Assembly (NCBI GenBank): GCA_965644265.1
Contig: OZ286469.1
Location: 39,866,001 to 39,930,000, forward strand
Length of the DNA stretch: 64,000 nt
From: Glycera tridactyla
Lineage: Eukaryota
Reading direction: 5' to 3'
Part shown: positions 1 to 63,590 of the stretch, one piece after another
How the letters are laid out: each line of letters opens with the position of its first letter
Numbering within the stretch: the stretch's first letter is position 1
Translations under genes and position numbers: made by a program
Notes under the pieces: generated by a model
The model's input: the letters and a program-made list of their open reading frames with translations, nothing else
The model's database searches: none
What the model was told of the DNA's origin: nothing

Positions 1-1743
1 TGGATGGGTTCGGCCAACTGTGGTGGAGCCTTCAATCTCGTCCAGTGCTCGCTCTCGACCATCACTGCTGGTGCACTCGATGTCACTGAATCCTTCTTTG
101 CCATGGCTATCACTCCTGATGAATGCGATGATGAAATATTCGAAGCTGATCTCAACTTTGCTCCTGTAAGTATCGAAAAGTAATATTTATGTATTGTGTA
201 TGATTGACAGTCTGTATCCATAATTTACAATGTACACTGACGGAGCTAAATAAAGAAAGATAGATACATACAAGTTTCAACCAGTGGGTTGATCAATTCT
301 ATCATTAGGGTATTGAAGTTTACAAGAATTTATTCACATAGCAGCTGAATAGGAATAATTCATAGTGCTGCGTGACTTCAAGAATATTTTGTTTCAGTTG
401 TATCATGTTTGTCTGCTTCATCCAGGATGGTGAAATCAATGGTGTCGTGACAGAGGTAGAGGCTGTGGAAGCATGTACGACCATGATCCAGGCATCAGCA
501 ACAGTTACAGCTTGCTCTGCAACAATCACACTAGACATTGAGGCTCAAATCTCAAGCTGTGCTATTGACTACCAGGTAAGATATATGGATTGATCATCAT
601 TGCCATTATCACACCCATAATCCTGTTCATGACATCATTCTCTATTTTACTTGAGAGAATGAACAGTGATGAAAAATTGCAGATTATTTTTAATAGTTCC
701 ATCTTGTGTGAGGGTGGTCTGGAGCCAAGAGCCTGTCGTGATCACATGTTTTTGTATAGATATATGTGCATTTCAACTAATCTGGGGCAAGATTTTGGCC
801 TTGCTTCTCTTTCACAAGCCAATCATATCCTGCTCATTCCCACAGAAAATTGTTCTTAGCCTTTTTCTGGCCCAACGCCTGACTATCCTATCAGGACGAT
901 CCTATATGTCCAGTGACATGTCTATGTCTCGTGAAGGATCTATTCAGTCTTCTCAGCCAAATTCTCCGTTGTTTTTCAAATTGATAGTATCGCTGATGTG
1001 GAGACAGATTTTCTAAGAGAAATGATATGTGGTGAATTGAAATACTATGTGGCTGAATTCGATTAAGACCAGGAGGAGTACCTTACAACAATCATATGAC
1101 TAATTGTATTGTATTGCTGTGTTTCTGACAGGCTTCTGGCATACTGGACTGGGCTGAGGCTGCTATCAATGCTCTAACTCGACAATGTCTGCGATCACTG
1201 GCGACAGACACCAATCATTGGGTGGCAGATGATGATGGAAATGTGGGGCCGCCGAATGACATCACAGAACAACTATGTGACAATGACTGCAGTGGGCATG
1301 GTACATGCACAGGTAAGTCTCACTAATTTACATCATCCAATTGCTGCACTTCATAATAACATAACCCTCACGTTTTGTATGATTATGATTGCTGTTGATG
1401 GCACATACTTCTTGCTATCTATTATCATGTTAATGATGAGTGATTTATTGATTGATTGATTGACCAATTGTTTGTTTGATTGATTGAATGATTGATGATA
1501 GTGGTGGCTGTGATGGATCTGCAGTTAGTGGTGGTTGTGATACTTCTTGCTATCTGTTATGATGTTAATGATGATTGATTGATTGATCGACTGATAGATT
1601 GATTGATTGATTGATTGATCAATTGATTGGTGATAGTGGTAGCCATGGTGGACCGGCATTTACTGGTGAATGTGAGGCCAGTTGCAATGGGAGTGACATT
1701 AGAGGTGGTGTTGATGCTGGTGTTGCTGGTGATGCTGGTGATG

Positions 1744-1814
<71 letters not shown>

Positions 1815-3685
1815 CACTGATAATTTTTGCAGGTGGTACATGCATCTGTGATGATGGTTGGATGCTGGGAGACTGTAGTCAAGAAACAAGTACTCCTCCA
1901 ACCATCCCTGCTACTCCTCAGCACGTCACATGTGATGAATCATGTGACTCAGTTGTAATCAATGGCAATAACTTCGCTAACCTGGCCACTCTCACCTGTC
2001 AGTTCACTACCATCACGGTATGTATCAATAGAGTTCAAACTGATTTCACTCTGGTTGCGCACATGCTTCAGAGTGATCCCACGTCCATCCTTAGCATCGG
2101 GAAGCTCACTTAATCACTATAGATCCAAGTGATCTTGGTTTCATGGGAGTTGTATCCAAGATTCGATTTGATTTGAAAATTTCACTGACTCAGGGGAAGT
2201 CCAAGGACCATGTTCTCTCCATTGTGGGCACAAAAATACATATGCAAATTTGCATCCATACACAATAATATAAAGAATGTTCTTTGGGTCATGGGAGTTC
2301 CATGTACCAGGGCGATGTCCAGCAGTACTTTAATGAGTTGGTTCTAAATAGCAGATGTCCTTGTGACTTCATGAAAGTTGAAATGATATCTATGGCTGCC
2401 ATTTTATTTCAATCAGATAGCTTGCCGTTCAATTATTTACTGCCTTTGTCTCATATTGAATTGCACACAGAATTCGCCCTCCCAGCAATCATCATCATGG
2501 GGATCTGAGTGTTTACATTGTTATTTTGTAGGTCACCACAACATCGTGGGTGGTCACAGCTGATGTTGTGACATCAACAGCAACATACCTCAGTGTTAGC
2601 CAGGTGATTTGCACGTTACCTGATCCTACACACAGCTATGAGGTCAAGATTGCGAATGATGGTGTGACTTTCACCGGTACTCCAATCCGAGTCTTCGTCA
2701 TCGATACTGACTGCTACATGTGTAATTTTGACGATGGAACATGCATGCCTGCAGTAAGTATCATTCTTTTGTGGAGATCCCTGCTGTGTTAGTATGCAAT
2801 TTCAAGTTGGGAAGGCCTCTATGACTGCGTGATTGAGATCCATTTGTCATCAAGTACTTACTAATGATAATCTATGATTGGGACTCTTGCTAATTTGACA
2901 AAATACATCTTGTGTTATTGCTTTACATCTCATCCTGCTGAGTTATAACATTACTTCAACTTTGACTACTGAACATTGAGTCCACTTCCAGATATAGCGG
3001 TATCCCATTGCGGTTTAATGGATCAAGGACAAACAGATTTTTGTCCAGTCCGTAATTACAGTTGTCATCTATTCTCATTGTGAACTTGTTTTCTGAATCA
3101 TCATCTTGAAAGACGAATCTGTAAGATAGCGCATATCACTGCAACAAAATGTTTGTTAGCATTCCAAACTGAAATCAAATCTAAACTCCCATCTTGATAC
3201 GAAATGATCTGATCACACGATCCATTCAAAATCATTAGATGTGTAAAAACCATGAGATGTTCATCATATAGAGTTTCCTCAATATGGTATATTCTACCCT
3301 CTGTTGAAATGGAAATATCTGATTTCTCCTATAGAAATAGCTTGATTATGCATGTTTTGAAAGCTCTAGTTACGTGGGATGAAGTACTGATGGCATCTGT
3401 TATCCTGTGATGTGATATATACACCAAACCCCATTGTGCCATGTCAAAACCAGGGTGTCCATGCTTTCCTCAAATTTTCGACATGACATTCTGGTAATGT
3501 CGATATAAGCGGCATGAGAGCTGTGGTCGAACTCGATTGAGCTAACTTTTATCTCCACAACATTCTTTTGAAGGTTGGTGCATGTCTGATTGATGGAGTG
3601 TGTTATAAGGATGGGGACAAGAATCCAGAAAATGAGGCAGAAATCTGCAGTTATGATGATAATCCTGTCGCATGGACTTTTGATG
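1..3685 (+). CDS. Module 0 (C-terminal part only): Cys-rich linker, helical region, EGF, IPT/TIG-like domain, CxIDGxCY exon
   Basis: Exons 1-165, 426-575, 1132-1312, 1833-2017, 2532-2753, 3574-3685. The first five are close paralogues of module 1 exons at 10192-13329; the last is a divergent counterpart of 14017-14128. Confidence 0.88.
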
Positions 3686-6600
3686 GTGAGTTGGCATGAG
3701 TTGAAAGAAGATCAAAGCTTCCTGTTCATTCTTCCATCTATATACCTACCTGCCTTCTTTCCATTCATCAGTTCATGTGTCTTCATGCCACTCTCCTCAC
3801 GTCTCCCTTCTTCTAGGTGGCATTGAAGCGGACTCTTCGGGCATCAACCTCATTTCTCAATTTTCCATCCCTCTACCAGACTCATTCTTTCCTCATACTT
3901 TCTGCCTTCTTCCCCCCCCCCCCGTTATTCCTATCACACTCTCTAAGCTCCTCATATTCATTTTATGGCTGCGATCTTGATGATATAATGTAGCTTCTGT
4001 CTTCAAAGATTTCCTGGCTTCAATATGAGCTCTATCAACCTCCTGAAATTGAGCTATTCTAGAGGACTGTTTGATAGGTGTAAAAGATACCGTGACATAT
4101 TATTTTGATGCAGTGCTCCATGTAGGTTTGAAAGACCGATCATTTCCATGTATGATTTTCTCCTTGCAGACGAGCCCGTGTTGTATCTGCCACTCACCTC
4201 CTGTGCAGCTGACATCGACTTCTCTATTTTCGAACAAGTGACCTCTTCAGATGAACTCACTTACATGGATGCACCAAATGGCATGATGGGTGGTGCTGCA
4301 GTGTTCACTGCTTCAGAGATGACGTCTCTTACCGTCACCAGTTCTGCCACCCTGGATACTTCCACTTCAATCACTATTCTTGCCCATATTTATGTTGAGG
4401 GTAATGGAACTATCCTCAACTTTGGAACGGATGCGGGTGTGGGCTTGGCAGTGAGGAACAATGATGATGGCACTGTGGTGCTTCAGTTCAACACCATCCA
4501 TGTGGCAGATGACTTTTTCCAAGCGACAGTGGAGTACAGCAACTTGCCGCTTCAACAGTGGCTGTATGTTGCAGCAGTCTATGACTACAACACTGGTACC
4601 ATGAGTGTGTCAGTAGATGGAATGGCAGGCGGAAGTCATACCTATAATCCAATCATACCGCTACGCACACAGTATGATCTCTATCTAGGTGGCATTGAAG
4701 CAGACTGGTTCTCAGGATCTCTGTCATGTGTCAGGATATACAACCGACCACTATCAACTGCAGAGATCAGTGATTGGGCCATCTGCCCTCTTGGTAAGCA
4801 TTATGATTCTTTCATTGTATCGTTCACTGGATGAGTTCACTGGATGAGTATTTGAACGTTCAAGTTGTTTGCATAATGTTGATTCTTATTTGGGTGACCC
4901 CATTCTTCATTGGAAACCCACTGACAGCTCGACTGGCTGTCCATTGTGATTGACAGAGAAAACGTTCGCTACATTCCCTACCAAACTTGAGTGCTTTACC
5001 AATTCTGTGGGACCCCCTCTGGTCGTCTTTGATCATAGAAATATTTCCTCCATCGGAATTAGTATTTGTAATCTTTTGGCGGATGCTCGAGCCTCTCATC
5101 TGATATGTTCTCTTGCTTGCAGGTCTGCCAGATAGTCCAGGACGTGATAGAGGTGAGTTGACAATGAGTTATGGGTGATTACAATATGTTCGATAGTTAG
5201 ATGGATTAGCATCAGTTGTGGGTATACTGCTGAGGCTATTTCTTTTCATGTATTTATCTACATATCCATCCCCATACCCATCGATTTATCCATTCATCCA
5301 TCCATTCATTCATCTCCCTCTATCCGGGATATCTGACAGCTTCTTTCCCTGTGCTGAATCTTTGGTCAGTTTTGGTTCAATGTCACATCAGATTAGAAGT
5401 TTTATATTCTGACGATCATGCAATCAGAGCCCATGCCATGCCCATCGTATGTAGGTGCACAAACAACCATGCAACCATTCCCTACCTTATATTTTGTACA
5501 TATTTCCGAATGGTGATACTCCTTCCCAGTCTTTCTCTTTGAAGAATGCGGTACACAAAATAGGAGCTGTTTTTCCAACCATGATGTCCATTCCAATAAT
5601 AGAACATTTCGAAAATCTTCATATCCCAACCTGGCGAAATGTTCAGCGTCATGCTGATTTCATCTCATGGCAACTGAATATATCACTCACTGGTATTGGT
5701 TCCCAATATACCATAATCTCTTCCATTTGTGTGCTGGACAGGTGAGACTTACAATTTCTGATTGGGTACATACATTAAGAATATTTGTGATGTATCCTCC
5801 CAAACAATGCTTTCAGTGTACCCGATGATGGATGCAATTCCCATGGTAACGCTGGAGATAATGGAGATTGAGAACTCTACAGAGAAATCATGGCAGTTGA
5901 GATGTGACAGTCCAACTGTGGACGATGGCATGATCATGTACGAAGCCACCTGGTATGTGGCAGGATATGCGTATGCAGAGTCCTTCTCTTATAATGGAAC
6001 CGAAGTGGCTCAAGTGACCAGCTACCTCACCCCAGAAATGCTGGATATGAACAACATTACCTATATCCCTGAGGTAAGCTCTCAGCCTTTATTGGCTCAT
6101 AGTTACACCCAGTTACTAAATTTCAAATGCAGACTCATGGCTTTTGAGAATACCTGTCTAATGTTTGTATTGGAGCAAATTCAGTGAATCTCCATGAGTC
6201 ACTGCCAATGTAGAGAGATACAGGAGCGATATGAGGTCATCAGCAGGCTGTTCACTTTGGAAATGCTCGCCAAAACCTCTACCAAGTATCGTTCATCTCA
6301 AGTGAAACAGAAAAATATCTTGTCTCAAAATGTAACATAACGTTAGTGACCGTTAGCTCAACTGAACAGCCTTCAGGCTTCAGTCAGTCTAAAGGGTTTC
6401 ACTGCAAATTCAACTAGTGGAGGAGTGACCACCGTTGCAGAACCGCAATTTTGAAATTGTTTGAAGTATTTAATCAGATTTGTGTGAATCATTCCATAGA
6501 GAAAATAGGAGTTATCTTTGTGCTACTCATTCAGCTGATAAAGGGCTTGGAATAAAAAGCAATCAGTTAACCATGACTACCGCCTTTAATTGTAGATCGT

Positions 6601-9600
6601 GTGTGAGGTGAGCACATGTTATGCTGATGACTGTGCTGTTATGTGCCCTCTGCAAAGTGAGCCATACATACCCTCTGCCCAGGTGAGTAACAACAATTGC
6701 CATACCATTCAAGAGTCAATTATATTTCTCTTTGTTGGTCACAATCATAATATCGACGATATCCAGTGTAGCTTGTGTCTCTATCACGAGATATATAAAC
6801 TAGTCGTTTGAGTACTACACGTGACATGCGGCCAAGATAGTTGTCTCTACACCTCAAAAGCTTTTCACAGATTTTATTGTATGAATATTCCATCATATGA
6901 GTGCTGGACCTAAATTTTGTATGACAAACTAATTCCACGGTGAGTGAGAGCACCTATCTAGAACGTGTTACAGAATGATAAAATACAAGCAAATAAAATA
7001 TGAAAAAGTCTAGATAGGGTCGGGATGGTGAGGGTTAGATGAAATTGATTATATTGTTTGCTCTACAAAGTGTACATTCACACCTGTACATTATTTGCTC
7101 CATCAGGTGACGACAGTTGGTCCACTGACAACGACTGAAGGTGGGGAGCCCGCCTACGTGGAAATACATACTTCTCTATCACCAGAGTTCTTCTGTATGA
7201 ACAGAACCTTGGAGGATGACCGCAGTGTCTGTGAGATTTCCGTCTGGACCTACATTGGAATCACTGATGACGAGCTCAAGTGTTATGACACCGGTATCTC
7301 AGTATCACAGGCGGTAATTGGTTGGGTTGCTGACTACCCGCAGGATGTCCGAGAGGATTGTGGTATCCGTATTACCATCACCAACTGGATGGAGACACTC
7401 CGCATCCCTATCTATGCCATGATTGATGGAGTTGTGGATGGCACACAGACACGTACTACACATGTCCATCACCAAGTGGAATATACCAACACCCACGTCT
7501 TTGATATGGAACTCGCTAGCATTGATGTAAGAATCATTGTGGACTTTTGTAGCAATTTCAGTATAGGAACACAGACTCATTTCTCTTAAAAAAAAACATA
7601 AAAAGGAGGGGATTGTGGCTTCAACTGTGGCTCAATATCATGAATGCATGGATGAGAAGAAACTTCCTTTCATTTGGTACATCTGCCATGAAAGCTAACA
7701 AAATGCTTGGTAGACTATGCCATAATCAGCTGAATATTTGGTTGTTCACAGGCCATCTTGTTTCAAGTTATCACTTCATGTACCACAGAGTTTGTGGAAC
7801 ATTTACACATGGATTGATTCTATAGAACTTGATCATATACCTGCCCCATACCTGTTGATTAACAACCAAGACCTACTGAAAACATAATGATGATAATGTA
7901 AAAGGTAGTCTAGGGGGTAGACTTTGGGTGATCTTGGAATAAGGTAGAAGTAGGTATGGTGATCAATTTTGTATTCTATACATTGCAGTGATGACTAGAT
8001 TCGCTCTATATTGCTTCTCACTTGTCTTTCAGGTGAACATTGTTGATGTGAACAATGATGTGGAGTGCCATGCCACAGGAGACCCTCACTACATCACTTA
8101 TGATAAGTAGTAAGTATGTGAATATGAGTTGCTTATATAACGCTCCCATTGTGTTTGTGCATGGTCTACTAAGGTATGAGATTTGCATTGAATATATGTG
8201 ATGTGGTTGGCCCTTAGGATAGTCAGTTAAGGCTTGTTTCACTTTGGTAATCAGAAATTAATTGTCCACATGCAGCATGTATTATGCCCTTCGAGGTTCA
8301 ATGCTCTTCTGTTTGAAATGAATGAAACATTCAAAACATGGTCGTTCGATGGGCAGGGGAGAGATGGGCTGATTGGATACGTCAGAAAAATTGAATTGGT
8401 TTCCAGATCGAGTTATGATGATATACATGATACCTTTGGATAATATACACATGATTGTCGGGGGCAGAAGATATGATGAAGAAATATTGGTTTTCAGCTA
8501 AAGAGAGCTTGATTTTCTCATCCTCCCGAGTAACACACTCGAAGCACATAATCAGCAGGTTTGATACAATGTACTGCTTTCTTCCTCTTTTAGTGAGTTT
8601 GACAACTACTTCGAAGGAGAGTTCATACTCTACAGGCACACATCATTGCCATATGAGGTATGTTTCAGGAGAAATCTTTTGCTTTGATTAATCTGATCCT
8701 ACCGATATCGCTATCAACAGATAACCATTACCATGATAGGAAATGCATCATCATCACGATGGTACCACTTAAGTCAATATCAAATCATTTGAATTGTCCC
8801 AAATCTTGATTTTTTTCACATGAATGTTCGAAGACCAGAAGTTGAACATTCTACCCCCACCAGTCGAAACCCCCAGAAGTCAAGAGAAGTATTCATAAAA
8901 TCAAGTATCCATATACCACTTATGTATATTTATTGCAATGTTGATTGAAATGCCTATCACTGTCCGTATCCATATCTATGCTTTGTATTTCAGGCACGCA
9001 CATTCCTACGGAAGTGTTATAATACTGTGGCCTGTACTTGTGCAGTAGCTGCTCGCTCTGGAGATGATGTCATTCTCTTTGATTCCTGCAACAATGGCGG
9101 CACCATTGCTGTCAAGGTGTATGCACATGGCGACCTCACTGCTGGAACACAGCTCCTACAATATAACGGTGGATCCAAGTATCAGGTGAGCTTTCTATAT
9201 TGAGAACCATCTAAAGAGAATGCATTCTTGTGAATTACGTTTGCATATCGCCAAAATAAGCAAAATTGCCTCTCGAAGATGAAGGTGAATATAGGCCAAA
9301 AATCACGAGCTACCATCTATCAATGGATGCGATTTGTTGCCATCAGAATTATGATTATGATTTCGATTATGATGATGACATCGATGAGATCGATAATCAC
9401 AGAGAGAGTTGTAACAGTAAATCATTATTCTCTTCACCATCATTTTTATATCACTATCATTATCATGATTGATATTATCATGACCATTTTTTTCATTATC
9501 TTTATTTTGTGACGATCAATATGTTTCATTACTCTTATTATTCCTGCAGTCATCTAATCACTTTTCACATACCCCAGCTCACTATGACCATTTCTTAATT

Positions 9601-33600: not shown

Positions 33601-33613
33601 TTTTCCATCTGCC

Positions 33614-33658
<45 letters not shown>

Positions 33659-33680
33659 GACTGACTACCTGTTTGTCTGT

Positions 33681-33717
<37 letters not shown>

Positions 33718-54700: not shown

Positions 54701-57700
54701 TGTTGATATGAATGATTCAAAGCTAGCTCTCCTTGACAACTTCATCATATCAACAAAATGTAAGGTTCAGCAAACCACCATGGATGATATAGACAAGTGG
54801 TAAAAGCTGAGTTGTCAGCTACTCCCACTTAACAACCTTTCAGGTTCCCTATAATCCAGTGTTCAGGGTCTGTGTAAGTGATGCCTGCAGGGGACAGAAA
54901 ATCTAGCTTTCATCGACCAGGAATACACGGCATACGTAATCCTCTGGGTTGGCACATGCCATGATACCACAACAACAAAAATCCATCAATTTCCTCTGAG
55001 GGTAATCACCTTAGCTCACTGTCAAATCAATTTTTTCCCCAGGCAATATGATGCGTACAACACTGGAGAATTCGTCATGTACGAACACAAGACTCTACCA
55101 TACAAGGTATGTGATGCCCTATCTTGATAACATACTATTGTGATAGACAATTCCTGAGTAATATTGGAGTGAAGATGTTTCATGCATAAGTGGTTTTGAT
55201 CATCAATGGTCGAACGCCGTAAATTGAATTGGAAATGCTCTATTAGACAATCACATGAAAACTTTCGAGGTGAATCATATACACAGCACCACATTCACTA
55301 ATTATGAACCCAGGAGATACAATATCATTAAAAAAGTATCATTTTCCACAGCGTTTGATAGTATAACTAAGAGTACATTCTTCAATGTGATACATTAATA
55401 GAATAAATCTTAATCTGGACAGCAACGGTGATTATGATGCAGCATGTTGATACACTGTCGCAATTTGCGACACATTGAGAATGCTACTCCTTATTCTCAG
55501 GAAGAGTTGGCGTCTCTACCGAATTTGTGTTTTTGTCGCATGTCCTGAATGAGCATCTATTAATATGGGGTTGGATCTTGCTCTTGGAGAGTGCCATCAT
55601 TTGTGGGCATCGAACTTGATTGTGCAGACATCAAACCTGTGATGCCCTACCTGCGACCAGATCGGCTTCTTCACGATTGTAGCTGACCCATGACCATTGT
55701 CGAAGAATGTCGGGAATTGTCGACATTAGCCAAGGGTCGAACGCAAGATTGTCGATAATCTGCTACAATCGTCACTGAGCCGAACTTGTCCCTAGTTCTC
55801 TACATCGCTGATGGTGACGCTTGACCTCCATCATGCTAGCCCATCCTATCATATTTTGGCGGGCGAACTTTGATGCATTGCATCAAGTTTTTCTTGTTTC
55901 TATTATTCCAGATTCATGCGTTGTCGATTCGGTGCACACCGACGGCACAGGCAGCCTGTAACTGTGGTGTGATGGTGCAGTCCGGTGACGATGTGATCTC
56001 CATCACGCAGTGCCCCACAGCCGACGACACAGCCAACAATATCCAGCCAGAACTGAAGGTCTACCTCTTCAATAACGGCGACCTCACATCTGGTACCAAA
56101 TTCTACAGCCTCAACAGTGGCGAAACCTACAAGGTCAGTATGAGATGGAATTGTTTGTTAAACGAGCATGAAATCTATTAGAGAGTTTTAAAGCACGAAT
56201 TCTATTGGTTTCACCATTGGGTGGGCCTAGTGGAGGGTCCATAAACTCTCGTAGCTGTCTTCCAAAATGTTTAGATATAAGGCGTCACGATGCTTCATAC
56301 AGTTTGACCCGCTTTCGGGAGTGTACTGGGGACATACCCCCTCCCCCAAAACATTGTATATATTACAGTTAAACATGGCATGTCAATTATTTCATACCTT
56401 CCATATTAAACTTAGTCCAAAGAACATTCGAATAGAACAGGTACAACTGCGGTGACTGGGAACATGTATGTTGGAACACAGGATTTGTAATGTTGTTGAT
56501 ATTCCACTGAACATCTATCAATATCTACTTGTGACTCTTAAGTTTGAGTAGGATCAAATCTAACAATGTGAAACAGACAGAAGTATTCTGAATCCATGCC
56601 CAGTATTCTCCCAGCTAGAGTAGGATACTACCAAAACCGAAAATCACATGAAATGATTCTCTCAGGCCAGGATGAAACAAGAATGGATGTGTTTTATATG
56701 CAGGTTGTCTTGCCCAATGGAGCATACGTGAAGGCGACACCGCAGTCAGCTCGTATTGGCTTTGTCGTTTATCACTACTTGGATCTGTTGATCAACCCTG
56801 CAATCACCGATGAGCAACAGGTGCAAGGTGAGAATTCAACTTCATTTCGTATTCAATTGGATTAATTGGTCATATCTGACAGCCTCTGTGATATTTCAAT
56901 ACTTACAAGCGATGATGCTTCATTTTCATTGAAAAAAAGCAAAAGCTCACTTGTTTGGGGCATCCAGAGGTATGAATTCAAGCCACAATCGCCAAAATGA
57001 GACGTTGGCAATTTTGCAAAGAATAGATCTGATCTGAGATACACAATAATACATAGATGATTGTCATCTGTTCACAACCAATATTCACTAGCAGCATGTA
57101 TGTCTATCGAGTGTTGACTGTCTTGCTGTGTATTTCAGGTATGTGTGGTACATACGATGGCATGTACTACACGGACTCCACCAACGGCAATGGTATCCGC
57201 GTCAACCAGATCTCCAGACCCAACTCTTTCATTACCTCCTGGACGTAAGTTCACGCATTTTCCCACCATGATACCACTGCTTTAATGTCACTTTCATCTC
57301 TTGAAGATATCATGTGTAGGCAGATCCTGCCAGATGGATGCTTGACTGAAGCAGTAGACTGTCTTTAATTGGTAACCAGAAATAGATACGAAAGTGAAAA
57401 TACATTGAATATATTCTTCTAGTCCGATATTCTACCGGACTATGTTTAAGATGTTCAGTCTCTAATAGTCCTGCCTGGGTTGAGACGTTTATCCCTACTC
57501 AATCAATCTCCATTCTATTAGGTTTCACTGTCTCCCCTTTCGTCACCCCCACGTTCTTCTTGTATTATGGTGAGGAACGCCTACTCTGGGCCACTCACTA
57601 TCTATCATTCACAATTATGTTGATGTCAATGCTTAGTTATTCTGATTCTTCATAGGGTAACTGGAATGGATCGTATTCAGTTCGGTGTGGAAGCCACAGG

Positions 57701-60700
57701 CTACGAGGATTCGAGTGCTAGCGATAGCTGGTGTGGCTGTATCAACGGGCAGGATATCTCCTGTGGATATGACTCCAGTGACTGCCAACTCTACTCCGAA
57801 AATGGTGAGCTGGGGATGCATTCACTCACTCATGCCCTCAATCAATCAATCAATCAGTTAATCGATCTTCTATACTATGGCAGTCCTTCATCAACTGGCA
57901 AACTGACCACCAAGGCATATGATATAGGCAGTAACCACATACAGTACATACCACAGTTGTTGTACTTCACACAGTGGTACTGTGATGGGGTTCCACAAGA
58001 TTCAATCCTGTGCCACAGCATATCCACTATATGAGTCGGTCAAATGGATGGACACCCAATGAAATAAGACTCCACCGTAGCTGACCAGACTCAATATAAT
58101 AGCAATAGGGGACAGACGGGCAGATAGACGGGCAGGCTGAAAAACAGACAGAGAGACTGACCGACTGATGGATGGACAAAGGGATGGACTGGCAGACAGA
58201 CATACANNNNNNNNNNNNNNNNNNNNNNNNNNNNNNNNNNNNNNNNNNNNNNNNNNNNNNNNNNNNNNNNNNNNNNNNNNNNNNNNNNNNNNNNNNNNNN
58301 NNNNNNNNNNNNNNNNNNNNNNNNNNNNNNNNNNNNNNNNNNNNNNNNNNNNNNNNNNNNNNNNNNNGCAGACAGATAGGCACACATACAAACAGACAGA
58401 CAGACAAATAGACAGACAAACAGACAGAAAATCTAAATCCCTGGACGAAACCGAATATAGCTCTATGAGAATGAACATATATATCTACAGATGTATAGTC
58501 TGTACAGGAGTGTATCTATTCATTGTCCCCTTATTACCTTCCAGCGGTGGACCAGACTGAGTGGCTGATAGACTCGCGTTCCAAAACACCTAACCCTGCG
58601 ACGACTCGGCGACGTCGAGAAGCCGTCGATACCTCGGACGATGCCTACCAAGAGGTCGATCCAACGCTCAATGATCCCAACTTTGTCGCCGAGGAGGTCA
58701 GTATATCTACATACATGTGGAGAGATTGTCCTGTCTTGTTTAAGGATAGGACACAACAACCTCACCAATGTATATCTGAACAATAGAAGTCCAGAACCAC
58801 CTCAGTGCATCCCATGTCACTGTCAACTTACCTTTGAACACATACACCTTAAATGTGTTGATTTTCAACAAATTAGATCTCAGTATCACAATGTAGGAAA
58901 TATAAAAGAACTCTCTAAGGATATTTAATACTCAGTAACCAAGTATTTCCCAACGAATATGGCGACGAAATCTGCGTTATATCCAGAAACGGGCACAACC
59001 AGGAGGGTGCGCAGGAGTTGATTCAACGCAGTAGGGTGCGGCGATCAGTAACACTAAGAAGAGAGAGCTTAAATGTCAGTATCTCGTTTCTGAAGCAAGG
59101 CCTGCTTGTGGACAGCCTTCCTTTCTCAAAACTTGTGGCTGGGCGCAGTTTTCCCGACCAAACTCGGGAGATATTTGAACAATATTTTGGCATGTCAATT
59201 GGTAGTGATAACCTGCTTTGATTTCGTAGGAGGTAACATGGCCAACGCCGACAGGAATCACAGAAAGCGAAGCCAACTCGACGTGTATGGATAGTATCCT
59301 GGGAAGCGAAGCGGCCGCAAGCTGTGCTTCCACCCTCGCCTCTAACTATACCACCGAGATCGCCAACTGTATCGAAGATGTTGGGGTAAGATATGAACAG
59401 AGATATCTGCTAGCATTGACTGTTTGTTTGGATTCACCAAAATTGATGGATGATTGTCAGGCATTATGGTGAATGATTCTTGTCTTATCCTATCTCATGC
59501 TATGACATATTCATGCAGTTTTCATTAATTCCTATATGCCGCATTGTTGTGTGCCATCCACAGTTTTATGTGCCTCAAAGCTTTTGAGCACTCTAAATGA
59601 CATGTGCCTTTTTCAGGGATGATTTTACGCTGTGCCCTGTGGCAAATGGCACATAAAGTTGTGGAAGGGCATATTGGACCAGAAGGCATATACAATTTTC
59701 CATACTTTGATATGATTACATGGTTTGAGGCACACACAAATCAGAAATGACACATGAAATCTGCATCAATGTGACCGAAAGACCCATACATATTCGCGAG
59801 CAAGAAAACCCCTGCTTATTTATGCAGTTTTGGTGTGTAATTTACACTATTATGTGCACCAAAGCATTGAAGCACTCTAAATGGCATGTGCTTCGGGAGC
59901 CCAGATTTGGGATATCCCTGGAAATCTGATGCAATATCTACATCAGTCGATGCTGATCTCTGTTTATAGCGTGGAGACAGTTTGGACTATGCCGACGGCT
60001 ATGTGACGTCGATAACGCAGACCTGTCTGGAGGAGTTGAACTCCGTGAGCGTAGAGGTGAACACCAATGAGACGACCGACTCCAACACCATCGAAGATCC
60101 CTACGAGGACATCAGTAGCAATCTGTGTCCTGACAACTGTAATGACCAGGGCACCTGTACAGCTGGTAAGTGATGCTATGTACTGACACTATATGTGAGG
60201 TTATACGAAACTAGGCCTGTTACAATTAACAATTCATCACAACCACACTATCTGAACATATCTAAGCAATTTCTCTCTATGTGTCGTTTACACATTCATG
60301 TGCCCAAAGCATTGAAGTAGTCTTGCGACTTGTTTGAGAACCGAGCCATTCGTTTGGAGAGATTGTGATGCTGGAGATTATGTGAGACTAGGCCTGTTAC
60401 AATCATCAACCCATCAATAACCATCGCTGCCACCACTAGAACCACCACCACTAGTACCACCTCAACCACCATCAGTGCCACTACTACCTGCAACACCACT
60501 TTCATAGTCACTGCTGCTAGCACACTTAATTTCACCTCAAGCAATAACATCACCATCACTCAATTTAGGTAAGTTCTCTCTTCGACACATGCATCGACAG
60601 GTGATGATCAATCGGCCATCTTCTTCGGGACTGCTAATGTAACACAATTTCTAGATTCTCTACTGTCGACGAAAGTTTTTAAAATTTGGCCAAGTATACT

Positions 60701-63549
60701 GAACATCTATCCAGCCGAATTTGTGTTCTCAGTGATTATCATCACTGTAAGCGTCAAAGATCTCGTCATAATGCCTATCTTGATTTTGCCTACAGGTGTA
60801 TGTAGTTGTGACTCGGGCTGGGCGGGCGACGACTGCTCCATCTCAGAGACTGAGCCTCCCACACTCAACCGGCTGGAGAACAGTGGTTTGTGTAGTACAG
60901 AGTCTGGAGACTGCCTCGAGATGCTCGTCTATGGTTCTGGCTTCCTCAATTCTGAAGAACTGACCTGTCACCTACAGCCTGCTAATGTAAGTCTGCTATC
61001 TATAGAGTCCGGTACACACTCACACTTTCTATCACACATGCGGGCGCACACACACTCTCACACACATGCACACTTTCACACACAAACACATACACACATA
61101 ATCCCACACAGGCACGCACACACCACAGCCACCATCACCAGCTTTGCTTTTCTCTGTGTCATGATCGAGATGCATGCCACTTGAGATCTTCTTGTAGGTG
61201 AAGTAGGATTGAAGATAGATTTGCATGAAAGATTGATTACTCGAGTTCATCGATCAGTCTCTTGGTTGTTTCTTGAGGAAGCTGATAGCTGTATGTGTGT
61301 ATTTACATGTGTAACTGCCAATCATTTGGATTTTCCATTAGGAATGGAAATTTTTGAAAGTTTTTTTCCCCTCATCAGTATTCAGGAAGGAAATTATTTT
61401 GAAATTATTTCTTTGTCCCCTCATCAGTGTTCTTCACAACTGATGGTAGGGAATGTGGCGGAATTTCACTTAATTACATCCTTACTTACACACAATGAGC
61501 TTTTGAGTTGTTAATGGCAAATATTCAGGATGGAAATTATTTTGAAAGTATTTCATAAACATTCAATGTGAAAATTCCATGGGATTGCCGCATGCAAGTA
61601 TTTCATGAATTCAACACTGATAACTGGTTCTAATTTCCCTGCAAGTTGGTAGAGTCGTTGTGAGGGTATGTCTGCTTTGTCTGGATCATTTACATAGATT
61701 TTCATCTTTCTTCTAGGTTGGCTTGGATACGTCAATCACGGGTACCGCCTACACGACTTCCGGTTTGTTTTTGACGACCAGTCAGATCCACTGCCCGGTG
61801 AACACGGCCACTCCGCACTATGTATCAGTCAGTAATGACGGTAGCACTATCAGCGAATTCAGCCTGCTCTTCGTGCCCTACTCACCAAGCTGCCTCACCT
61901 GTACTGCCAATGCCAACTCCACCGAGGCCCAGTGTCTCACTGCCGTAAGTAACATTGCAGATCTATCAATCTACTGATTTGCATCAACTGGGTTTCAAAG
62001 GCACTATTTGAGCAGATTGCAAGCAGAAATGCCATTGGATACTTGAAAGAAATTGGACTCTTTCGAAAGATGTGAATCGTGGACATCTTCATCTAGTGAT
62101 GCTGAATGCATCATGAAAGATCGGCTGTGTGAGTTAGTTTCTATACTGCACTCATGTAGAAGATACACCCTGTTATTTCACAGAGTAGTGGGAGTTCCCC
62201 AGCAAGAGTGTTCTAGAGTATAGAACTTTCCCATGAAGAAAAAATGTTTAGAATCGTCCATAACTTCAATCTCGAATGATACTGCATGGGTTGAAGAAAA
62301 AGAAAGAGAGAATGGGTAATAGAGAGGTTTATTAGACTCAGCTTTTTTGGCACAAATCATAATCACATTCGAAAAAAACAAATAATCACATTCAAAGATT
62401 TCTGTCTGAATAAGGTGTTGAAATATTTCATGATGTGTTGCAGTATGGTGGTTGTGTGATCGATAACGTTTGTTATGTTATGGGAGAGACGATGGAGGGC
62501 AATGCATGCTTTGTGTGTGATCCAGCACAGAACGAGTACGGCTGGACTTATGATGACTCAGGTGAGTGCTTTGTATACCTCCCCAATCTCTCCTAGATTC
62601 TGGAGAATTTGCTGTTGGTTTCTTCTTTATTTCTTTTTTTTTCTTACAAAATTCCCCCTCTGGCAGTGGAGTTAGCCAAATGTTCGTCCAATGAGAGAGG
62701 ATGTCAGATCTGTTGGTTTCTATTTCTTTTTTCTTTTTTTCTTTTTTTTACAAAATTGCCCTTCTGGCGGTGGAGTTAGGCAAATGTTCGTCCAATGAGA
62801 GAGGATGTCAGATTTGAGACGAATCTGCTTACTTGTGAACGTTATATAGTTTTTCATATGTTTGAGAGAGTTGATTGGGCAAATTTTCCAAAATGTGCAT
62901 TGGTGGCAAAGTGTCAAACATTAGCAGGAAGATTGNNNNNNNNNNNNNNNNNNNNNNNNNNNNNNNNNNNNNNNNNNNNNNNNNNNNNNNNNNNNNNNNN
63001 NNNNNNNNNNNNNNNNNNNNNNNNNNNNNNNNNNNNNNNNNNNNNNNNNNNNNNNNNNNNNNNNNNNNNNACCACCAATAGTAGTGACAAATGTAATAGT
63101 ATCATTTGTAGCTGCAGCAGCATCGTCAGTAGCAGCAACAACACCCTTTGGCTCAGTAGCCTCATGCTCTATGGTATCCCATGACCATCATCGACACATT
63201 GCCATCAGTTTTCCAACCACCACCTTCATCACTACCTCATAATCATCACCGCAACTACCATCACCGACCTTACCACCACCACCACCACCACCAATTTAGA
63301 GCTGGCACAGCTTAATCCATGGCTCTCATTGATACTGTGATTCTTACTGACATTGATATGATGAGCGAAATTGACTTATGAAGTCATTGATATGCCTTTG
63401 TTCTTTGCAGACTCATCTTGTGCGAGTACGGCTGAATCTACATCACTGAGTAGCGACATCACGTGGGGTGTGGTGGGTGTTGCAATACTCATCGGTGTCC
63501 TACTCATCATGCTCACTGCATGCTTGTGTTATGAACGAGTGAATCGAAC
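1..63549 (+). CDS. VWDE: Giant VWDE-like type I membrane protein with tandem LamG-VWD-EGF-IPT modules; partial at both ends; 83 exons and about 5,290 aa inside the window
   Basis: Exons were joined by hand at canonical AG/GT sites; phases match throughout and no stops were found. Motifs match the VWDE family: CxxxGDPHxxTYD, EGEFILYRH, ACxCAVAAxxGDDVI, GLCGTYDG...F...SWR, WPTPTGITE, CxNDCSGHGTC..G.C.CD.GW..GDC, Y.I..SNDG..FS and C.IDG.CY..G..NP. A hydrophobic helix lies at the 3' end. The symbol means VWDE-like; one-to-one orthology is not shown. Confidence 0.9.
1400..1814 (+). repeat. Intronic simple repeats: (GATT)n tracts, a degenerate ~135-bp duplication and (GAT)23
   Basis: tacttcttgctatct.ttat.atgttaatgatga occurs twice; the GAT run spans 1746-1814. 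Confidence 0.85.
4170..4793 (+). CDS. LamG-like / ConA-like lectin-glucanase domain exon (module 1)
   Basis: WLYVAAVYDYNTGTMSVSVDG...LYLGG....FSGSLSCVRIYNRPLSTAEI fits the Laminin_G_3/pentraxin-like pattern. Single exon, phase 1 at both ends. Confidence 0.85.
4170..14128 (+). CDS. Module 1: LamG-like + VWDE module (1,023 aa)
   Basis: Exons 4170-4793 (LamG), 5123-5152, 5817-6073, 6596-6682, 7107-7526, 8033-8109 (GDPH), 8594-8657, 8994-9185, 9621-9832, 10192-10447, 10974-11123, 11883-12063, 12312-12496, 13108-13329, 14017-14128. Confidence 0.88.
6245..6372. mobile_element. MITE-like element, AGGCTGTTCAGTT-TIR family, copy 1
   Basis: aggctgttcactt ... aactgaacagcct; 128 bp. Confidence 0.55.
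11639..11770. mobile_element. MITE-like element, AGGCTGTTCAGTT-TIR family, copy 2
   Basis: aggctgtccagtt ... aactgaacagcct; 132 bp. Confidence 0.62.
12118..12256. other. N-run of 139 nt (gap or masked simple repeat)
   Basis: Flanked by GAT/GCT low-complexity sequence; the paralogous position in module 0 holds (GAT)23. Confidence 0.9.
13700..13880 (-). mobile_element. Decayed non-LTR retrotransposon RT fragment
   Basis: HNGMMLY..., then (frameshifted) GIRGYMHSWMDCCFSDNRQ...IEEGV. This resembles the HxGLLxKL...GIRG..W...FLSDR.Q...ExGVPQG segment of LINE RT with near-correct spacing. Confidence 0.5.
14434..15060 (+). CDS. LamG-like domain exon (module 2)
   Basis: FVVAMYDGTTGEMSLSVD...LYVGD...GTISCVQLFAKVHTSEEI; paralogue of 4170-4793. 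Confidence 0.82.
14434..23768 (+). CDS. Module 2: LamG-like + VWDE module (1,025 aa)
   Basis: Exons 14434-15060, 15513-15539, 15963-16222, 16634-16720, 17358-17783, 18567-18643, 18970-19033, 19536-19727, 20216-20427, 20600-20858, 21385-21531, 21651-21831, 22412-22593, 22857-23078, 23657-23768. Confidence 0.9.
19162..19444 (+). mobile_element. SINE-like retroposon with (CAAA)n tail, longest copy
   Basis: Flanked by a 12-bp direct repeat ACTCGATGTTGG (19150-19161, 19445-19456). The body gcaggggagagaacatctagctttc...gggttgatacat.cc.ttaaacctcaaacaaacaaac is shared with five other copies. Confidence 0.75.
24601..25227 (+). CDS. LamG-like domain exon (module 3)
   Basis: Paralogue of 14434-15060 with the same 627-nt length. 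Confidence 0.82.
24601..34708 (+). CDS. Module 3: LamG-like + VWDE module (1,025 aa)
   Basis: Exons 24601-25227, 25609-25635, 25913-26172, 26606-26692, 27453-27878, 28540-28616, 29364-29427, 29974-30165, 30568-30779, 31232-31490, 31963-32109, 32233-32413, 33214-33395, 33995-34216, 34597-34708. Every exon length equals its module 2 counterpart. Confidence 0.9.
28149..28285. mobile_element. MITE-like element, AGGCTGTTCAGTT-TIR family, copy 3 (inverted relative to copy 2)
   Basis: aggctgttcagtt ... aactgtacagcct; the reverse complement shares ctgacacactca and ga.atattt with copy 2. Confidence 0.62.
29229..29329 (+). mobile_element. 5'-truncated copy of the same SINE-like family
   Basis: Same 3' body and tail; flanked by CTCA(T/C)ATGTGCA (29217-29228, 29330-29341; 11/12 match). 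Confidence 0.72.
30358..30401 (-). mobile_element. 3' stub of the SINE-like family in reverse orientation
   Basis: (TTTG)n-aggtttaacggcatgtatcaaccc is the reverse complement of the family tail. Confidence 0.7.
33613..33723 (+). repeat. (CTGT)n/(CTGA)n microsatellite
   Basis: Directly visible. Confidence 0.9.
35019..35645 (+). CDS. LamG-like domain exon (module 4)
   Basis: Paralogue of 14434-15060 with the same 627-nt length. Confidence 0.82.
35019..44590 (+). CDS. Module 4: LamG-like + VWDE module; the final CxIDGxCY exon is absent and a 31-nt exon follows instead
   Basis: Exons 35019-35645, 36204-36230, 36609-36868, 37235-37321, 37763-38182, 38731-38807, 39204-39267, 39782-39973, 40910-41121, 41721-41976, 42438-42584, 42910-43090, 43652-43836, 44369-44590. 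Confidence 0.88.
42151..42297. repeat. Possible small MITE
   Basis: 9-bp terminal inverted repeat aataggggt/acccctatt; only one copy seen. Confidence 0.3.
44035..44172. other. N-run of 138 nt
   Basis: Flanked by (TGTC)n and (TCCA)n tracts. Confidence 0.9.
45150..62561 (+). CDS. Divergent terminal VWDE module: no LamG; RRRR site, WPTPTG motif, RGDS, EGF, IPT-like domain
   Basis: Exons 45150-45180, 45439-45671, 46293-46391, 52488-52707, 53813-53997, 54606-54682, 55043-55106, 55912-56133, 56704-56827, 57139-57244, 57656-57804, 58545-58696, 59230-59385, 59970-60165, 60796-60986, 61717-61944, 62444-62561. Phases are consistent across the DIRS-containing intron. Confidence 0.82.
46753..46876 (-). 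repeat. DIRS right ITR plus ~52-nt right extension
   Basis: 46805-46876 is inverted relative to the left ITR; 46753-46839 is a perfect 87-nt inverted match to the ICR at 46937-47023. Confidence 0.93.
46937..47054 (-). repeat. DIRS internal complementary region (ICR)
   Basis: 87 nt are complementary to the right end and 35 nt (47020-47054) to the left end (52049-52083). The two parts overlap on ATTA/TAAT, giving a circle-junction copy. Confidence 0.95.
47253..48365 (-). CDS. DIRS ORF3, tyrosine recombinase (370 aa from the first ATG; reading frame open to at least 48449), overlapping the 3' end of ORF2
   Basis: Catalytic set visible: R in TGQRCQ, HSTR (HxxR), W in SAGWS and Y in FARHY. Confidence 0.93.
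   Translation of the reverse strand: MVFPNGATADQISNSSTEPQTAVNPSFQTNSSTSTLPTAASVGSISFKSTLRTLGISERVSSTILQSWSPTTIIQYATYVRKWAAYSKERSANPLHPLVKLLMDFLQGMVDTGLSYSTINTAKSAVQALWSCAGHEKLDSPLLKRFMLGAAEIRPSESRYRDTWDPDVVLHYIKNLPPNESLPFKILTMKLAMLAALVTGQRCQTLHALSINQLRLSDDCACFIVTDRLKNKKASAPPLIVHFPKYEDSRICVLSCVKCYIEKSKSLRRPDEDKLFIITQKPFTKASKDTIRRWIKSIMNHAGIDMDKYKVHSTRAASTSKAANSLSLLSIMKSAGWSGRSTFARHYHRPIVQHGEFAQAVLNPTTFTHR
48068..50098 (-). CDS. DIRS ORF2: reverse transcriptase + RNase H + Dam-like N6-adenine methyltransferase (676 aa)
   Basis: RT motifs IDLKDAY, PQGLSSSPRNFTK and YLDDILI. RNase H motifs FTDASNTGWGA, HINAKELLAV, HSDNTT and NVVADKESR. Methylase motifs IDLFASRLN and YMFPPF. Confidence 0.95.
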   Translation of the reverse strand: MNSFCAASLPLFYIEWTKITSDPVILNYVLYGIDIEFWNWPQQTSKPVTVLDVNMSQIMDKQVSDLYHDGVLEITEPEPYDFYSRVFLRAKKDGTKFRMIINLKCIKEQIVYRHFKMTTFETCVGMMRSGYFMGSIDLKDAYFTVKVQDQFQKFLKFIWKGVHYKFVGMPQGLSSSPRNFTKILKPIISFLQSKGISACAYLDDILIMSPSESECNENIFETVCLFTKLGFHINYKKSQLVPTQCLEHLGLRLNTRKMKVYLTEKRKFTILIRAHPLLFEIPTIRQVMSFLGTCESSKLAVSHAYMYKHQVEMEKNQALRYSKGDLESKMGLSHKALQDVVWWTTLAHTCPKPVIPPPVLIHVFTDASNTGWGAHYDNQSTGGHWSSEEQLLHINAKELLAVKLALMTFFSTTHDTHIQIHSDNTTVVAHINDMGGCRSMILNDLAKEIWSWAHYLRIWLSAVFIPGVFNVVADKESRCMNERTEWKLETKIFLWICEVFNANPTIDLFASRLNYQIQKFVSWKPDPLACGTDAFTLSWSNNLYYMFPPFCILNRVIQKIEEEGVSTIMVVPFWTTQPWFSQMVRLLTKYPILLPNRRQLLTLPFKPTAVHPLYPQLRLLAVYLSSQPSEHSVFLKELAQLSCNHGVQPLSYNMQLMLGNGQHIQKKDLQIPFIHW
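50119..51687 (-). CDS. DIRS ORF1, Gag-like protein (522 aa from the first ATG)
   Basis: First ATG in good context (gtcaacATGg). Conserved DIRS gag block RSDMRLQRIQ...ERKYLLRPFLNPEFRGLC...LFGDKL. Basic R/S/D/H-rich N-terminus and RG/Q-rich C-terminus. Confidence 0.88.
   Translation of the reverse strand: MDDNHSSQNVMPRLSPVRTGHLSTMNDKDMTNRDDRMSGRHDREDRRETSKRKRSESQHRPRSVDKQHGGGKRSKSYHGSKHRSDDHHSTSKSHRDRDKDGARRSRSQHRTSHSKSSGEKALEAVTGMQNQMSTLQDQLTQLTNAVMSNRSGRDTVDNTSNLPPIRNTVPTATITRPIHEVSSAEEGEIDQDADVDELDENEVSHAMLVGDPDSNDDLFDVSSVKATASQNIQDDDNYDLADELNNLFQLEAARGEDIDEKLTKSLLGMFQKPLVKSQLDKLLESLKSPGNLGNMLDSERTNEEIWGNVPRPSQRSDMRLQRIQMLILKGIIIQLELQKEAKRMKGPMAKIALASVKNSLALAVSANEELVVERKYLLRPFLNPEFRGLCARPDDYNPMLQKHLFGDKLNDKVTSIAASKAITKRISKSGSYQQSNFQYHSRGKQQQKSFLGQDFYPNRRGRGSAPKGRFRGARNRRGQRGQQYQYQGYQHYQQFSQQPQMSTQYQPGMMMPVQNVPQQGKN
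52015..52083 (-). repeat. DIRS left ITR
   Basis: Reverse complement of 46805-46876; 39 nt are identical, with three small differences toward the terminus. Confidence 0.93.
52278..52378 (+). mobile_element. Diverged copy of the SINE-like family
   Basis: gggtttatgagtgatgcctgcggg...ctttcat...cagga...ggttgatacatgccatttaa aligns with the family body. Confidence 0.55.
53367..53516 (+). mobile_element. SINE-like family copy with (CAAA)n tail
   Basis: tttcaggttcccc...gtgagagtgatgtctgcaggggagagaaca...gccgttaaacctcaaacaaacaaacaaacaaac. Confidence 0.72.
54808..54981 (+). mobile_element. SINE-like family copy
   Basis: gagttgtcagctactcccacttaacaacctttcagg... aligns with 19268-19440. Confidence 0.68.
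55662..55783. repeat. Fold-back element with 22-bp imperfect arms
   Basis: tcggcttcttcacgattgtagc ... gctacaatcgtcactgagccga; the spacer has three copies of attgtcga. Confidence 0.5.
58207..58367. other. N-run of 161 nt
   Basis: Flanked by (GACA)n tracts. Confidence 0.9.
58713..58928 (+). mobile_element. Fragment of an I-group (Nimb/I-like) LINE ORF2 C-terminus
   Basis: Translates EIVLSCLRIGHNNLT...PPQCIPCHCQLTFEHIHLKCVDF, i.e. xLRIGH followed by a CX2CX7HX4C zinc knuckle, typical of I-group LINE ORF2 ends. Intronic. Confidence 0.75.
59533..59692. repeat. Palindromic (fold-back) MITE-like element
   Basis: Terminal tatatgcc/ggcatata plus inner arms ccatccacagttttatgtgcc / ggcacataaagttgtggaaggg. 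Confidence 0.5.
62612..62813 (+). repeat. ~100-bp tandem duplication in an intron
   Basis: 62612-62709 and 62710-62813 both read ctgttggtttc...acaaaatt...tggc.gtggagttag.caaatgttcgtccaatgagagaggatgtcagat. Confidence 0.85.
62936..63070. other. N-run of 135 nt
   Basis: Followed by ACC/AGC low-complexity sequence. Confidence 0.9.
63411..63549 (+). CDS. Transmembrane exon of the VWDE-like gene
   Basis: Acceptor ttctttgcag, donor gtaagt. Encodes DSSCASTAESTSLSSD-ITWGVVGVAILIGVLLIMLTACLCY-ERVNRT. In phase with the exon at 62444-62561. Confidence 0.85.
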
Positions 63550-63590
63550 GTAAGTTACGCTCATTCTTCTCCCCTATTCCAAACAAAATC

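Follow-up and report, generated by a model that had tools for sequence, protein, structure and literature searches.

The window analyzed here (64,000 bases of Glycera tridactyla, contig C29:39,866,001–39,930,000; 41% G+C, four runs of N) comprises the 3′ third of what is probably a single gene of 16 tandem modules, A to P, related to the vertebrate protein VWDE. It contains the tail of module K, the complete modules L, M, N and O, a divergent module P and a terminal exon encoding a transmembrane (TM) helix, with five VWD domains in all and, from K, part of a sixth module. LamG exons, four in number, precede L, M, N and O; module P lacks one. The closest named relatives of the encoded proteins are from molluscs, nemerteans and a brachiopod (25–36% identity). 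Besides the window, 226 kb of upstream and 30 kb of downstream sequence were retrieved, 14 exon types were mapped by tblastn, and the genome (2.04 Gb, 207 contigs) was searched. Queries for searches and folds were single exons or database proteins, and protein lengths are sums of exon lengths.

A recurring fourteen-exon cassette

All-against-all blastp of the open segments on the forward strand revealed about 14 exon families that recur with a period of 10.2–10.6 kb. These form a cassette of 14 exons (E1–E14; ~3,040 nt, ~1,016 aa). A Laminin_G_3 exon comes first, followed by Ig-like exons, four exons for a VWD domain, Cys-rich exons, an EGF and an IPT-like domain, and the cassette closes with a Cys-rich piece. 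The exons are flanked by a pyrimidine tract and AG on the 5′ side and by GTAAG or GTGAG on the 3′ side; within the window, the best-scoring AG/GT sites were chosen as borders. The phases at the two ends of each exon are 1/1 (E1), 1/0 (E2), 0/0 (E3), 0/0 (E4), 0/2 (E5), 2/0 (E6), 0/0 (E7), 0/2 (E8), 2/0 (E9), 0/0 (E10), 0/1 (E11), 1/0 (E12), 0/0 (E13) and 0/1 (E14). One phase-consistent chain runs through all exons, including each step from E14 to the following E1, which is always phase 1.

Exon lengths are nearly fixed, at 627, 260, 87, 426, 77, 64, 192, 212, 259, 147, 181, 182, 222 and 112 nt for E1 to E14. The twelve modules D–O are regular: E3 measures 84–90 nt (mostly 87), E5 77, E6 64, E7 192, E8 212 (once 218), E11 181 and E14 112 nt. 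Ten of them (D–G and I–N) sum to 3,030–3,060 nt, each total divisible by 3. In module H, in which LamG is spread over three exons, thirteen mapped exons sum to 2,421 nt, likewise divisible by 3, and module O requires a 31-nt exon at 45150–45180 for its total of 2,961 nt. The introns between modules measure 305–832 bp.

In the window, all on the forward strand, the tail of module K (1–3685, the remainder lying upstream) was recognized by blastp and tblastn to its sister modules and by its splice-phase chain; it consists of the rest of E9 (1–165), E10 (426–575), E11 (1132–1312), E12 (1833–2017), E13 (2532–2753) and E14 (3574–3685). Module L (4170–14128; 14 exons, 3,039 nt) begins with a LamG exon at 4170–4793, encodes its VWD domain in E5 (8033–8109, with GDPH at 8078), E6 (8594–8657), E7 (8994–9185) and E8 (9621–9832), and ends with E14 at 14017–14128. 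Module M (14434–23768; 3,048 nt), our reference, was delimited by Pfam matches to Laminin_G_3 and VWD and by splice sites and phases; its exons E1–E7 lie at 14434–15060, 15963–16222, 16634–16720, 17358–17783, 18567–18643, 18970–19033 and 19536–19727, and E8–E14 at 20216–20427, 20600–20858, 21385–21531, 21651–21831, 22412–22593, 22857–23078 and 23657–23768. Module N (24601–34708; 14 exons, 3,048 nt) is 88% identical to M at the amino-acid level. Module O (35019–45180) comprises E1–E13 at 35019–44590 (2,930 nt) and the 31-nt exon, which occupies the place of E14, has phases 0 to 1 and encodes DACATTEDCN plus one base; it restores the frame into module P.

Module P (45439–62561, forward strand), divergent and last, was traced by tblastn and splice phases through E2′ (45439–45672), E3′ (46293–46391), E4′a (52488–52707), E5′ (54606–54682, GDPH at 54651), E6′ (55043–55106), E7′ (55912–56133), E8′ (57057–57244), E9′ (from ~57656), E10′ (~59229–59394), E11′ (59970–60165), E12′ (60796–60986), E13′ (61717–61944) and E14′ (62444–62561), with EGF-type Pfam matches in 60573–61181. 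The terminal exon (63411–63549, forward strand) has a phase-1 acceptor. It codes first for a short linker and next for the TM helix ITWGVVGVAILIGVLLIMLTACLCY, a hydrophobic helix of 25 residues with a maximum Kyte–Doolittle 19-residue mean of 2.94, and then for ERVNRT and a TAA stop (63547–63549).

Several structural proposals of an earlier sequence-only reading are borne out by these exons. Internal modules are led by LamG, as the exons ahead of L, M, N and O show; the chain does end in a TM helix; and the proposed repeating unit of ~1,025 aa, equated with the whole VWDE core, agrees with the ~1,016 aa found here and with homology to true VWDE that extends beyond the VWD domain (E=7e-53, Ig_VWDE, PF26129 and E13–E14). 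Its length of more than 5,290 aa for the window lies within 1–2% of the exon sum of ~5,230 aa. The proposal of at least six VWDE-type modules in one reading frame holds as regards the frame, which is a spliced open reading frame and phase-consistent throughout; the count is to be amended to five VWD domains and a sixth module's tail in the window, and to 16 modules in the gene.

The array beyond the window

A search of the organism's own genome found 13–15 further copies of the LamG and E4 exons, all on the same strand of C29 at 39.71–39.90 Mb, and none elsewhere in the genome. Mapping the 14 exon types by tblastn resolved 16 colinear modules, A–P, from C29:39,709,9xx to the TM exon, a span of ~228 kb reaching up to 39.93 Mb. 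Summed exons give 12,147 aa for D–O and roughly 16,000 aa overall. Phases also match at the junctions A–B, B–C, O–P and P–TM exon, with A–B and B–C in phase 1. The TM exon occurs once in 260 kb, and the stretches between modules yielded no TM exon, no stop and neither a start nor a signal-peptide exon.

Exons similar to the PAN domains seen in relatives from bivalves and sea slugs occur only upstream of module A. The candidate N-terminal exons (L001:1350–1760, 5592–5822, 6550–6783, 7858–8301 and 8963–9430) include two PAN/Apple-like ones, similar to the PAN regions of the Pecten, Tegillarca and Elysia relatives, and an additional beta-rich region that has no Pfam match. Searches by tblastn with the relatives found neither an F5/8C discoidin domain nor extra modules upstream of module A or in the next 60 kb upstream.

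At the 3′ end, the TAA stop overlaps a consensus donor, AAC|GTAAGT, at 63546|63547 (63546–63552). Read as a stop, it leaves a cytoplasmic tail of 6 aa; splicing from this donor, which is in phase 2, would require a downstream exon. No downstream cytoplasmic-tail exon was found in 30 kb. An open frame containing NPGYNPAY, about 11 kb past the TM exon (in L019, beyond the window), was rejected as a tail exon, having no acceptor of the right phase and no pyrimidine tract and running into a repeat resembling a short interspersed nuclear element (SINE).

Modules share 49–63% protein identity with one another, rising to 89–92% within the young group J/K/L and 88% between M and N; module O is 67% identical to both. 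Modules A and B are far more divergent than C–O. The ~170 regular exons all have open frames and conserved splice sites. The ratio of non-synonymous to synonymous divergence (dN/dS) between modules is 0.11–0.17, with dS of 0.35–0.6 in the young pairs. In those pairs (J/K, K/L and M/N), exons align over 92–100% of their length and introns over 7–32%, with similar identity wherever they can be aligned. Purifying selection on exons combined with turnover of introns by insertion and deletion explains this contrast, and gene conversion is not needed.

The four assembly gaps of the window each lie between recognized exons. The gap at 12118–12256 falls in the E11–E12 intron of L, between exons ending at 12063 and starting at 12312 (phases 1/1), and the gap at 44035–44172 in the E12–E13 intron of O, between exon borders at 43836 and 44369 (phases 0/0). 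Both introns are exon-free in the other eleven regular modules, and so no exon is expected in these gaps. The gap at 58207–58367 lies between E9′ and E10′ of P, which are phase-compatible across it, and the gap at 62936–63070 between E14′ of P (ending at 62561, phase 1) and the terminal exon (starting at 63411, phase 1). The spacing from E14 to the TM helix is ~19 residues in the Glycera gene and 13–24 residues in relatives.

Turning to the exon structure of individual domains, LamG occupies a single exon in eleven modules and is split over two or three exons, yet intact, in B, C and H (L003:5439–7111, L006:738–2100 and L013:2563–4595, in the upstream pieces of the array), which points to intron gain or loss inside the array. 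The introns also harbor a repeat of ~100 bp ending in (CAAA)n (19346–19444, 29226–29324, 53404–53505 and 54882–54938), which translates as an open frame and is probably a fragment of a SINE or of a miniature inverted-repeat transposable element; the first two copies are 90% identical. The copy at 19346–19444 bears on the composition of module M: an arrangement of this module lacking E6 was ruled out, as E6 lies at 18970–19033 and the piece at 19346–19444 is this intronic repeat. Long microsatellites of the (CATC/CATCCATCC)n type were also observed in introns, at 5197–5539 and from L005:9700 to L006:230, where they give open HPSIHPSIHPS frames; such repeats can pass for coding sequence in lists of open reading frames. 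Finally, a DIRS1-type retroelement identified by Pfam matches (46753–52083, reverse strand) is inserted in the E3′–E4′ intron of P and is not part of the gene product. Its three open reading frames are all open on the reverse strand: 50119–51702 (527 aa, no Pfam match), 48068–50098 (RVT_1 and RNase H) and 47253–48449 (tyrosine recombinase/Phage_integrase).

Domain identities and lophotrochozoan relatives

Exon E1 encodes a Laminin_G_3 domain (PF13385), with 63.8 bits (E=2.7e-17) at 4109–4831 and 43.3 bits (E=5.5e-11) at 14397–15080 against a gathering cut-off of 27.6, and with 59.1 bits in module A. Exon E2 resembles Ig_VWDE (PF25776), with E=5.7e-4 for module A (below the gathering score), 4e-8 for the Pecten relative and 2e-5 for that of Tegillarca. 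For E4, folding from a 30-sequence alignment gave an Ig-like beta-sandwich (predicted local distance difference test, pLDDT, of 90). This model has no specific structural relative among its matches, which were generic Ig-like and PapD-like sandwiches (best E=0.02 in the PDB, TM-score ~0.5 in the Atlas), and an ESM Atlas feature search with the E4 exon gave low recognition and no usable lead.

The VWD domain (PF00094) extends over E5–E8. Because it is split over these four exons, each exon matches the profile only in part: E8 (20216–20428) covers VWD positions 113–155 with E=5.5e-5, and full-length profile matches are obtained in the relatives. A fold of the VWD and downstream region of the Lineus relative (pLDDT 83) matches the D assemblies of MUC5AC, MUC2, VWF and FCGBP with E=1e-12 to 1e-8. 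Exons E9–E10 are Cys-rich and partly helical, and no Pfam match to C8 or TIL was found in the exons or in any relative. A few alignments to VWF D′D3 reach over the post-VWD part of the Lineus model, which is itself Cys-rich and partly helical, but with root-mean-square deviations of 8–15. Exons E11/E12 encode a teneurin/tenascin-type EGF. We tentatively assign E12/E13 as IPT/TIG-like from a sequence pattern that we take to be characteristic of such domains; a TIG match in the Argonauta relative is weak (E=0.069). Exon E14 encodes a short Cys-rich piece.

Each module contains 41–48 Cys residues, and E5 encodes the motif C-x3-GDPH-[YFV] in 14 of the 16 modules (C–P); within the window, GDPH lies at 18612, 28585 and 38776 and at the positions given above for L and P. 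Module A carries NDPH instead (L002:5296–5475), and E5 of module B was not located. In the relatives NDPH predominates; GDPH was seen in one Bulinus and three Aplysia modules, and the fish VWDE sequence examined has no D-P-H. Possibly, an Asn-to-Gly change created autocleavage sites in this motif. In FCGBP, all GDPH sites are cut in the endoplasmic reticulum, the fragments remain disulfide-linked, and both Asp and His are required (PMC8267560; PMC10880436).

A HMMER scan with E4 retrieved 85 proteins, the long ones among which are all lophotrochozoan and annotated as hypothetical or uncharacterized. When the exon types were mapped on the relatives with phmmer and hmmsearch, the module order seen here recurred, repeating every ~1,000–1,020 aa. 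In Lineus longissimus LOC135489721 (2,670 aa), a signal peptide and an F5/8C domain are followed by two copies of LamG_3 plus core, with LamG directly ahead of the core, then a TM segment and a tail. Aplysia californica LOC106014199 (4,490 aa) has four modules, a TM segment and a tail; Bulinus KAH9523928 (3,858 aa) has four modules and a partial Elysia relative (3,799 aa) at least four. The Argonauta models GAB1607640/41 (3,038 and 3,759 aa), which have consecutive accessions, both end mid-module, and mollusc models of this kind are visibly truncated predictions. Pecten maximus (LOC117339037) and Tegillarca have three modules with PAN between them, and relatives in Tubulanus (LOC141899868), Haliotis and Ylistrum carry Laminin_G_3. 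TM forms with one module are present in Lingula (where the annotation reads "mucin-17"), in Bradybaena and in a Logan transcript.

The family thus shares with the Glycera array the order of module pieces (Ig-like E4, VWD, Cys-rich, EGF, IPT-like, Cys-rich end), tandem copies and one C-terminal TM segment. It differs in having one to four modules, perhaps more in the truncated models, against 16 in Glycera; in the use of PAN instead of LamG between modules in bivalves and Elysia; and in the F5/8C discoidin domain with which many members begin and which was not found in the Glycera gene. The comparison runs against the suggestion that the Glycera lineage invented this design, given LamG and TM in the two-module Lineus protein, four modules and TM in Aplysia, single-module TM forms in Lingula and Bradybaena, and Laminin_G_3 in other relatives. 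By this comparison, LamG, tandem copies and the TM segment all predate the Glycera lineage, and the novelty lies in the extreme copy number of 16. As to the architecture being undescribed, literature searches (VWDE with annelid or invertebrate terms, and the locus names of relatives) retrieved no description of the family, although it is present in public databases as uncharacterized proteins. A further suggestion, a mucus or glycocalyx scaffold, gains no support from composition: the modules contain no Pro/Thr/Ser-rich (PTS) mucin domain, with S+T+P at 20–23% per module and no 25-aa stretch above 56%, and are rich in Cys.

Among characterized proteins, vertebrate VWDE has a homologous core that includes more than the VWD domain. 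With the E value given above, VWDE of the fish Betta aligns to the Lineus relative, the two having VWD, Ig_VWDE (PF25776) and PF26129 in common; exon hidden Markov models match the VWD domain of fish VWDE, and those for E13–E14 match VWDE residues 776–851. In the literature, VWDE figures as a secreted protein with VWD and EGF domains that belongs to regeneration blastemas (PMC7390686, PMC9117669, PMC9790225). It has one module, a long C-terminal EGF array, no TM segment and no LamG (PMC9117669, PMC7390686), whereas in the Glycera protein each of the 16 modules would have one EGF and the C-terminus a TM helix. FCGBP is alike in that a single chain carries a series of VWD domains (13 in human), most with GDPH, that undergo autocatalytic cleavage and stay held by disulfides (PMC8267560, PMC10880436), and its D10 is matched by the VWD model of the Lineus relative (E=2e-8). 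It differs in its VWD-C8-TIL-E unit of ~400 aa, in being secreted and in lacking TM, LamG, Ig, EGF and IPT. The D assemblies of MUC2, MUC5AC and VWF are the best structural matches of the VWD region in the Lineus model (E=1e-12); the Glycera protein differs from these proteins in its other domain context and in having no PTS domain and no CK or VWC ends.

One gene or several

We consider it probable that the array forms one gene, which spans at least 228 kb, has roughly 225 exons and encodes a type I membrane protein of ~16,000 aa and 16 modules. A single transcript is suggested by matching phases at all junctions, inter-module introns of 305–832 bp, one TM exon in 260 kb, PAN-like exons confined to the region ahead of module A, and the multi-module TM chains of Aplysia and Lineus.

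Several observations weigh against this assignment. Annotated relatives reach at most ~4,500 aa, and a 16-module mRNA is unprecedented in the family. The 8 kb ahead of the PAN-like exon yielded no signal-peptide or initiator exon. Close database matches comprise only single genomic exons from an environmental assembly, with no transcript, expressed sequence tag or protein; a word search with the LamG exon likewise returned one environmental single-exon fragment, which is not transcript evidence. The join from O to P rests on the 31-nt exon, and the gaps at 58207–58367 and 62936–63070 could hide an exon. The 6-aa cytoplasmic tail is short beside the roughly 40–80 aa of relatives, several of which have an NPxY/F-like motif; with the stop overlapping a perfect GTAAGT donor, there may be a further 3′ exon. 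Finally, cleavage at GDPH is predicted from the motif, and the relatives mostly have NDPH.

Some of these points would suit an array of two or more adjacent genes, with A and B apart from the regular array or with internal promoters giving proteins of three to five modules; only the last would be membrane-anchored and the others secreted. Such a division would accord with the one to four modules of annotated relatives, with the greater divergence of A and B from C–O, and with an array known here from DNA and a signal-peptide exon that was not located. We regard it as unlikely, since neither a start, a signal-peptide exon, a stop nor a TM exon was found between modules, every intron between modules (305–832 bp) has strong splice sites of matching phase at both its donor and its acceptor end, and the mollusc models that stop mid-module are visibly truncated predictions.

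Alternatively, one gene could give rise to mRNAs that typically retain far fewer than 16 modules, with modules skipped as in-frame cassettes and isoforms varying in length and in LamG and VWD content. Symmetric phase-1 borders and module sums divisible by 3 would permit this, and modules that differ by 40–50% in sequence are not redundant; yet no module is marked as optional in the sequence and splice sites are equally good in all, and we give this possibility little credence. That the array arose through misassembly or consists of pseudogene copies in decay is highly improbable: although the region is highly repetitive and the window has four assembly gaps, the gaps lie in introns, the modules are 49–92% identical in protein with dS of 0.35–0.6 for the closest pairs and are not duplicate copies, and open exons, conserved splice sites and low dN/dS run through the ~170 regular exons.

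A predicted chain of disulfide-rich modules

Under the single-gene reading, exon order predicts an N-terminal part with two PAN-like domains, 15 LamG-led modules, a 16th without LamG and one TM helix. Within a module, the predicted order is LamG_3, an Ig_VWDE-like domain, a small Cys-rich piece, an Ig-like beta-sandwich, VWD, a Cys-rich/helical region, teneurin-type EGF, an IPT-like domain and, last, a Cys-rich piece. We attribute the array to the in-frame duplication, in tandem, of the 14-exon cassette with its phase-1 introns at either border; each copy has since been maintained by purifying selection. The product of the array would form a filament of great length at the cell surface or in the apical matrix, built from globular domains rich in disulfides and displaying 15 lectin-like LamG domains. 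By analogy with FCGBP, where GDPH is cut and the fragments are held by disulfides, the chain would probably be nicked once per module at GDPH and held together as ~1,016-aa links. A scaffold or an adhesion/recognition filament at the cell surface or in the apical matrix would fit this architecture; a gel-forming mucin would not.

More tentatively, and with considerable doubt, we propose a tethered chain-link filament: a ~16,000-aa chain with 15 LamG and 16 VWD domains (FCGBP, cited as the vertebrate record, has 13), self-cut at 14 GDPH sites into ~1,016-aa links that remain joined inside each VWD. Its length could be tuned by in-frame module skipping, and it would have become self-nicking when the NDPH usual in the family changed to GDPH.

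If the array is expressed as one transcript, its product would be among the largest animal proteins and would contain the largest VWD run known to us. The family is conserved across molluscs, nemerteans and brachiopods, with no function described for it; in vertebrates, the related VWDE is needed for regeneration from a blastema. The near-universal GDPH motif leads to a biochemical prediction, one Asp-Pro nick per module, and the array offers a clean example of growth by duplication of a symmetric-phase multi-exon cassette, with each copy under selection.

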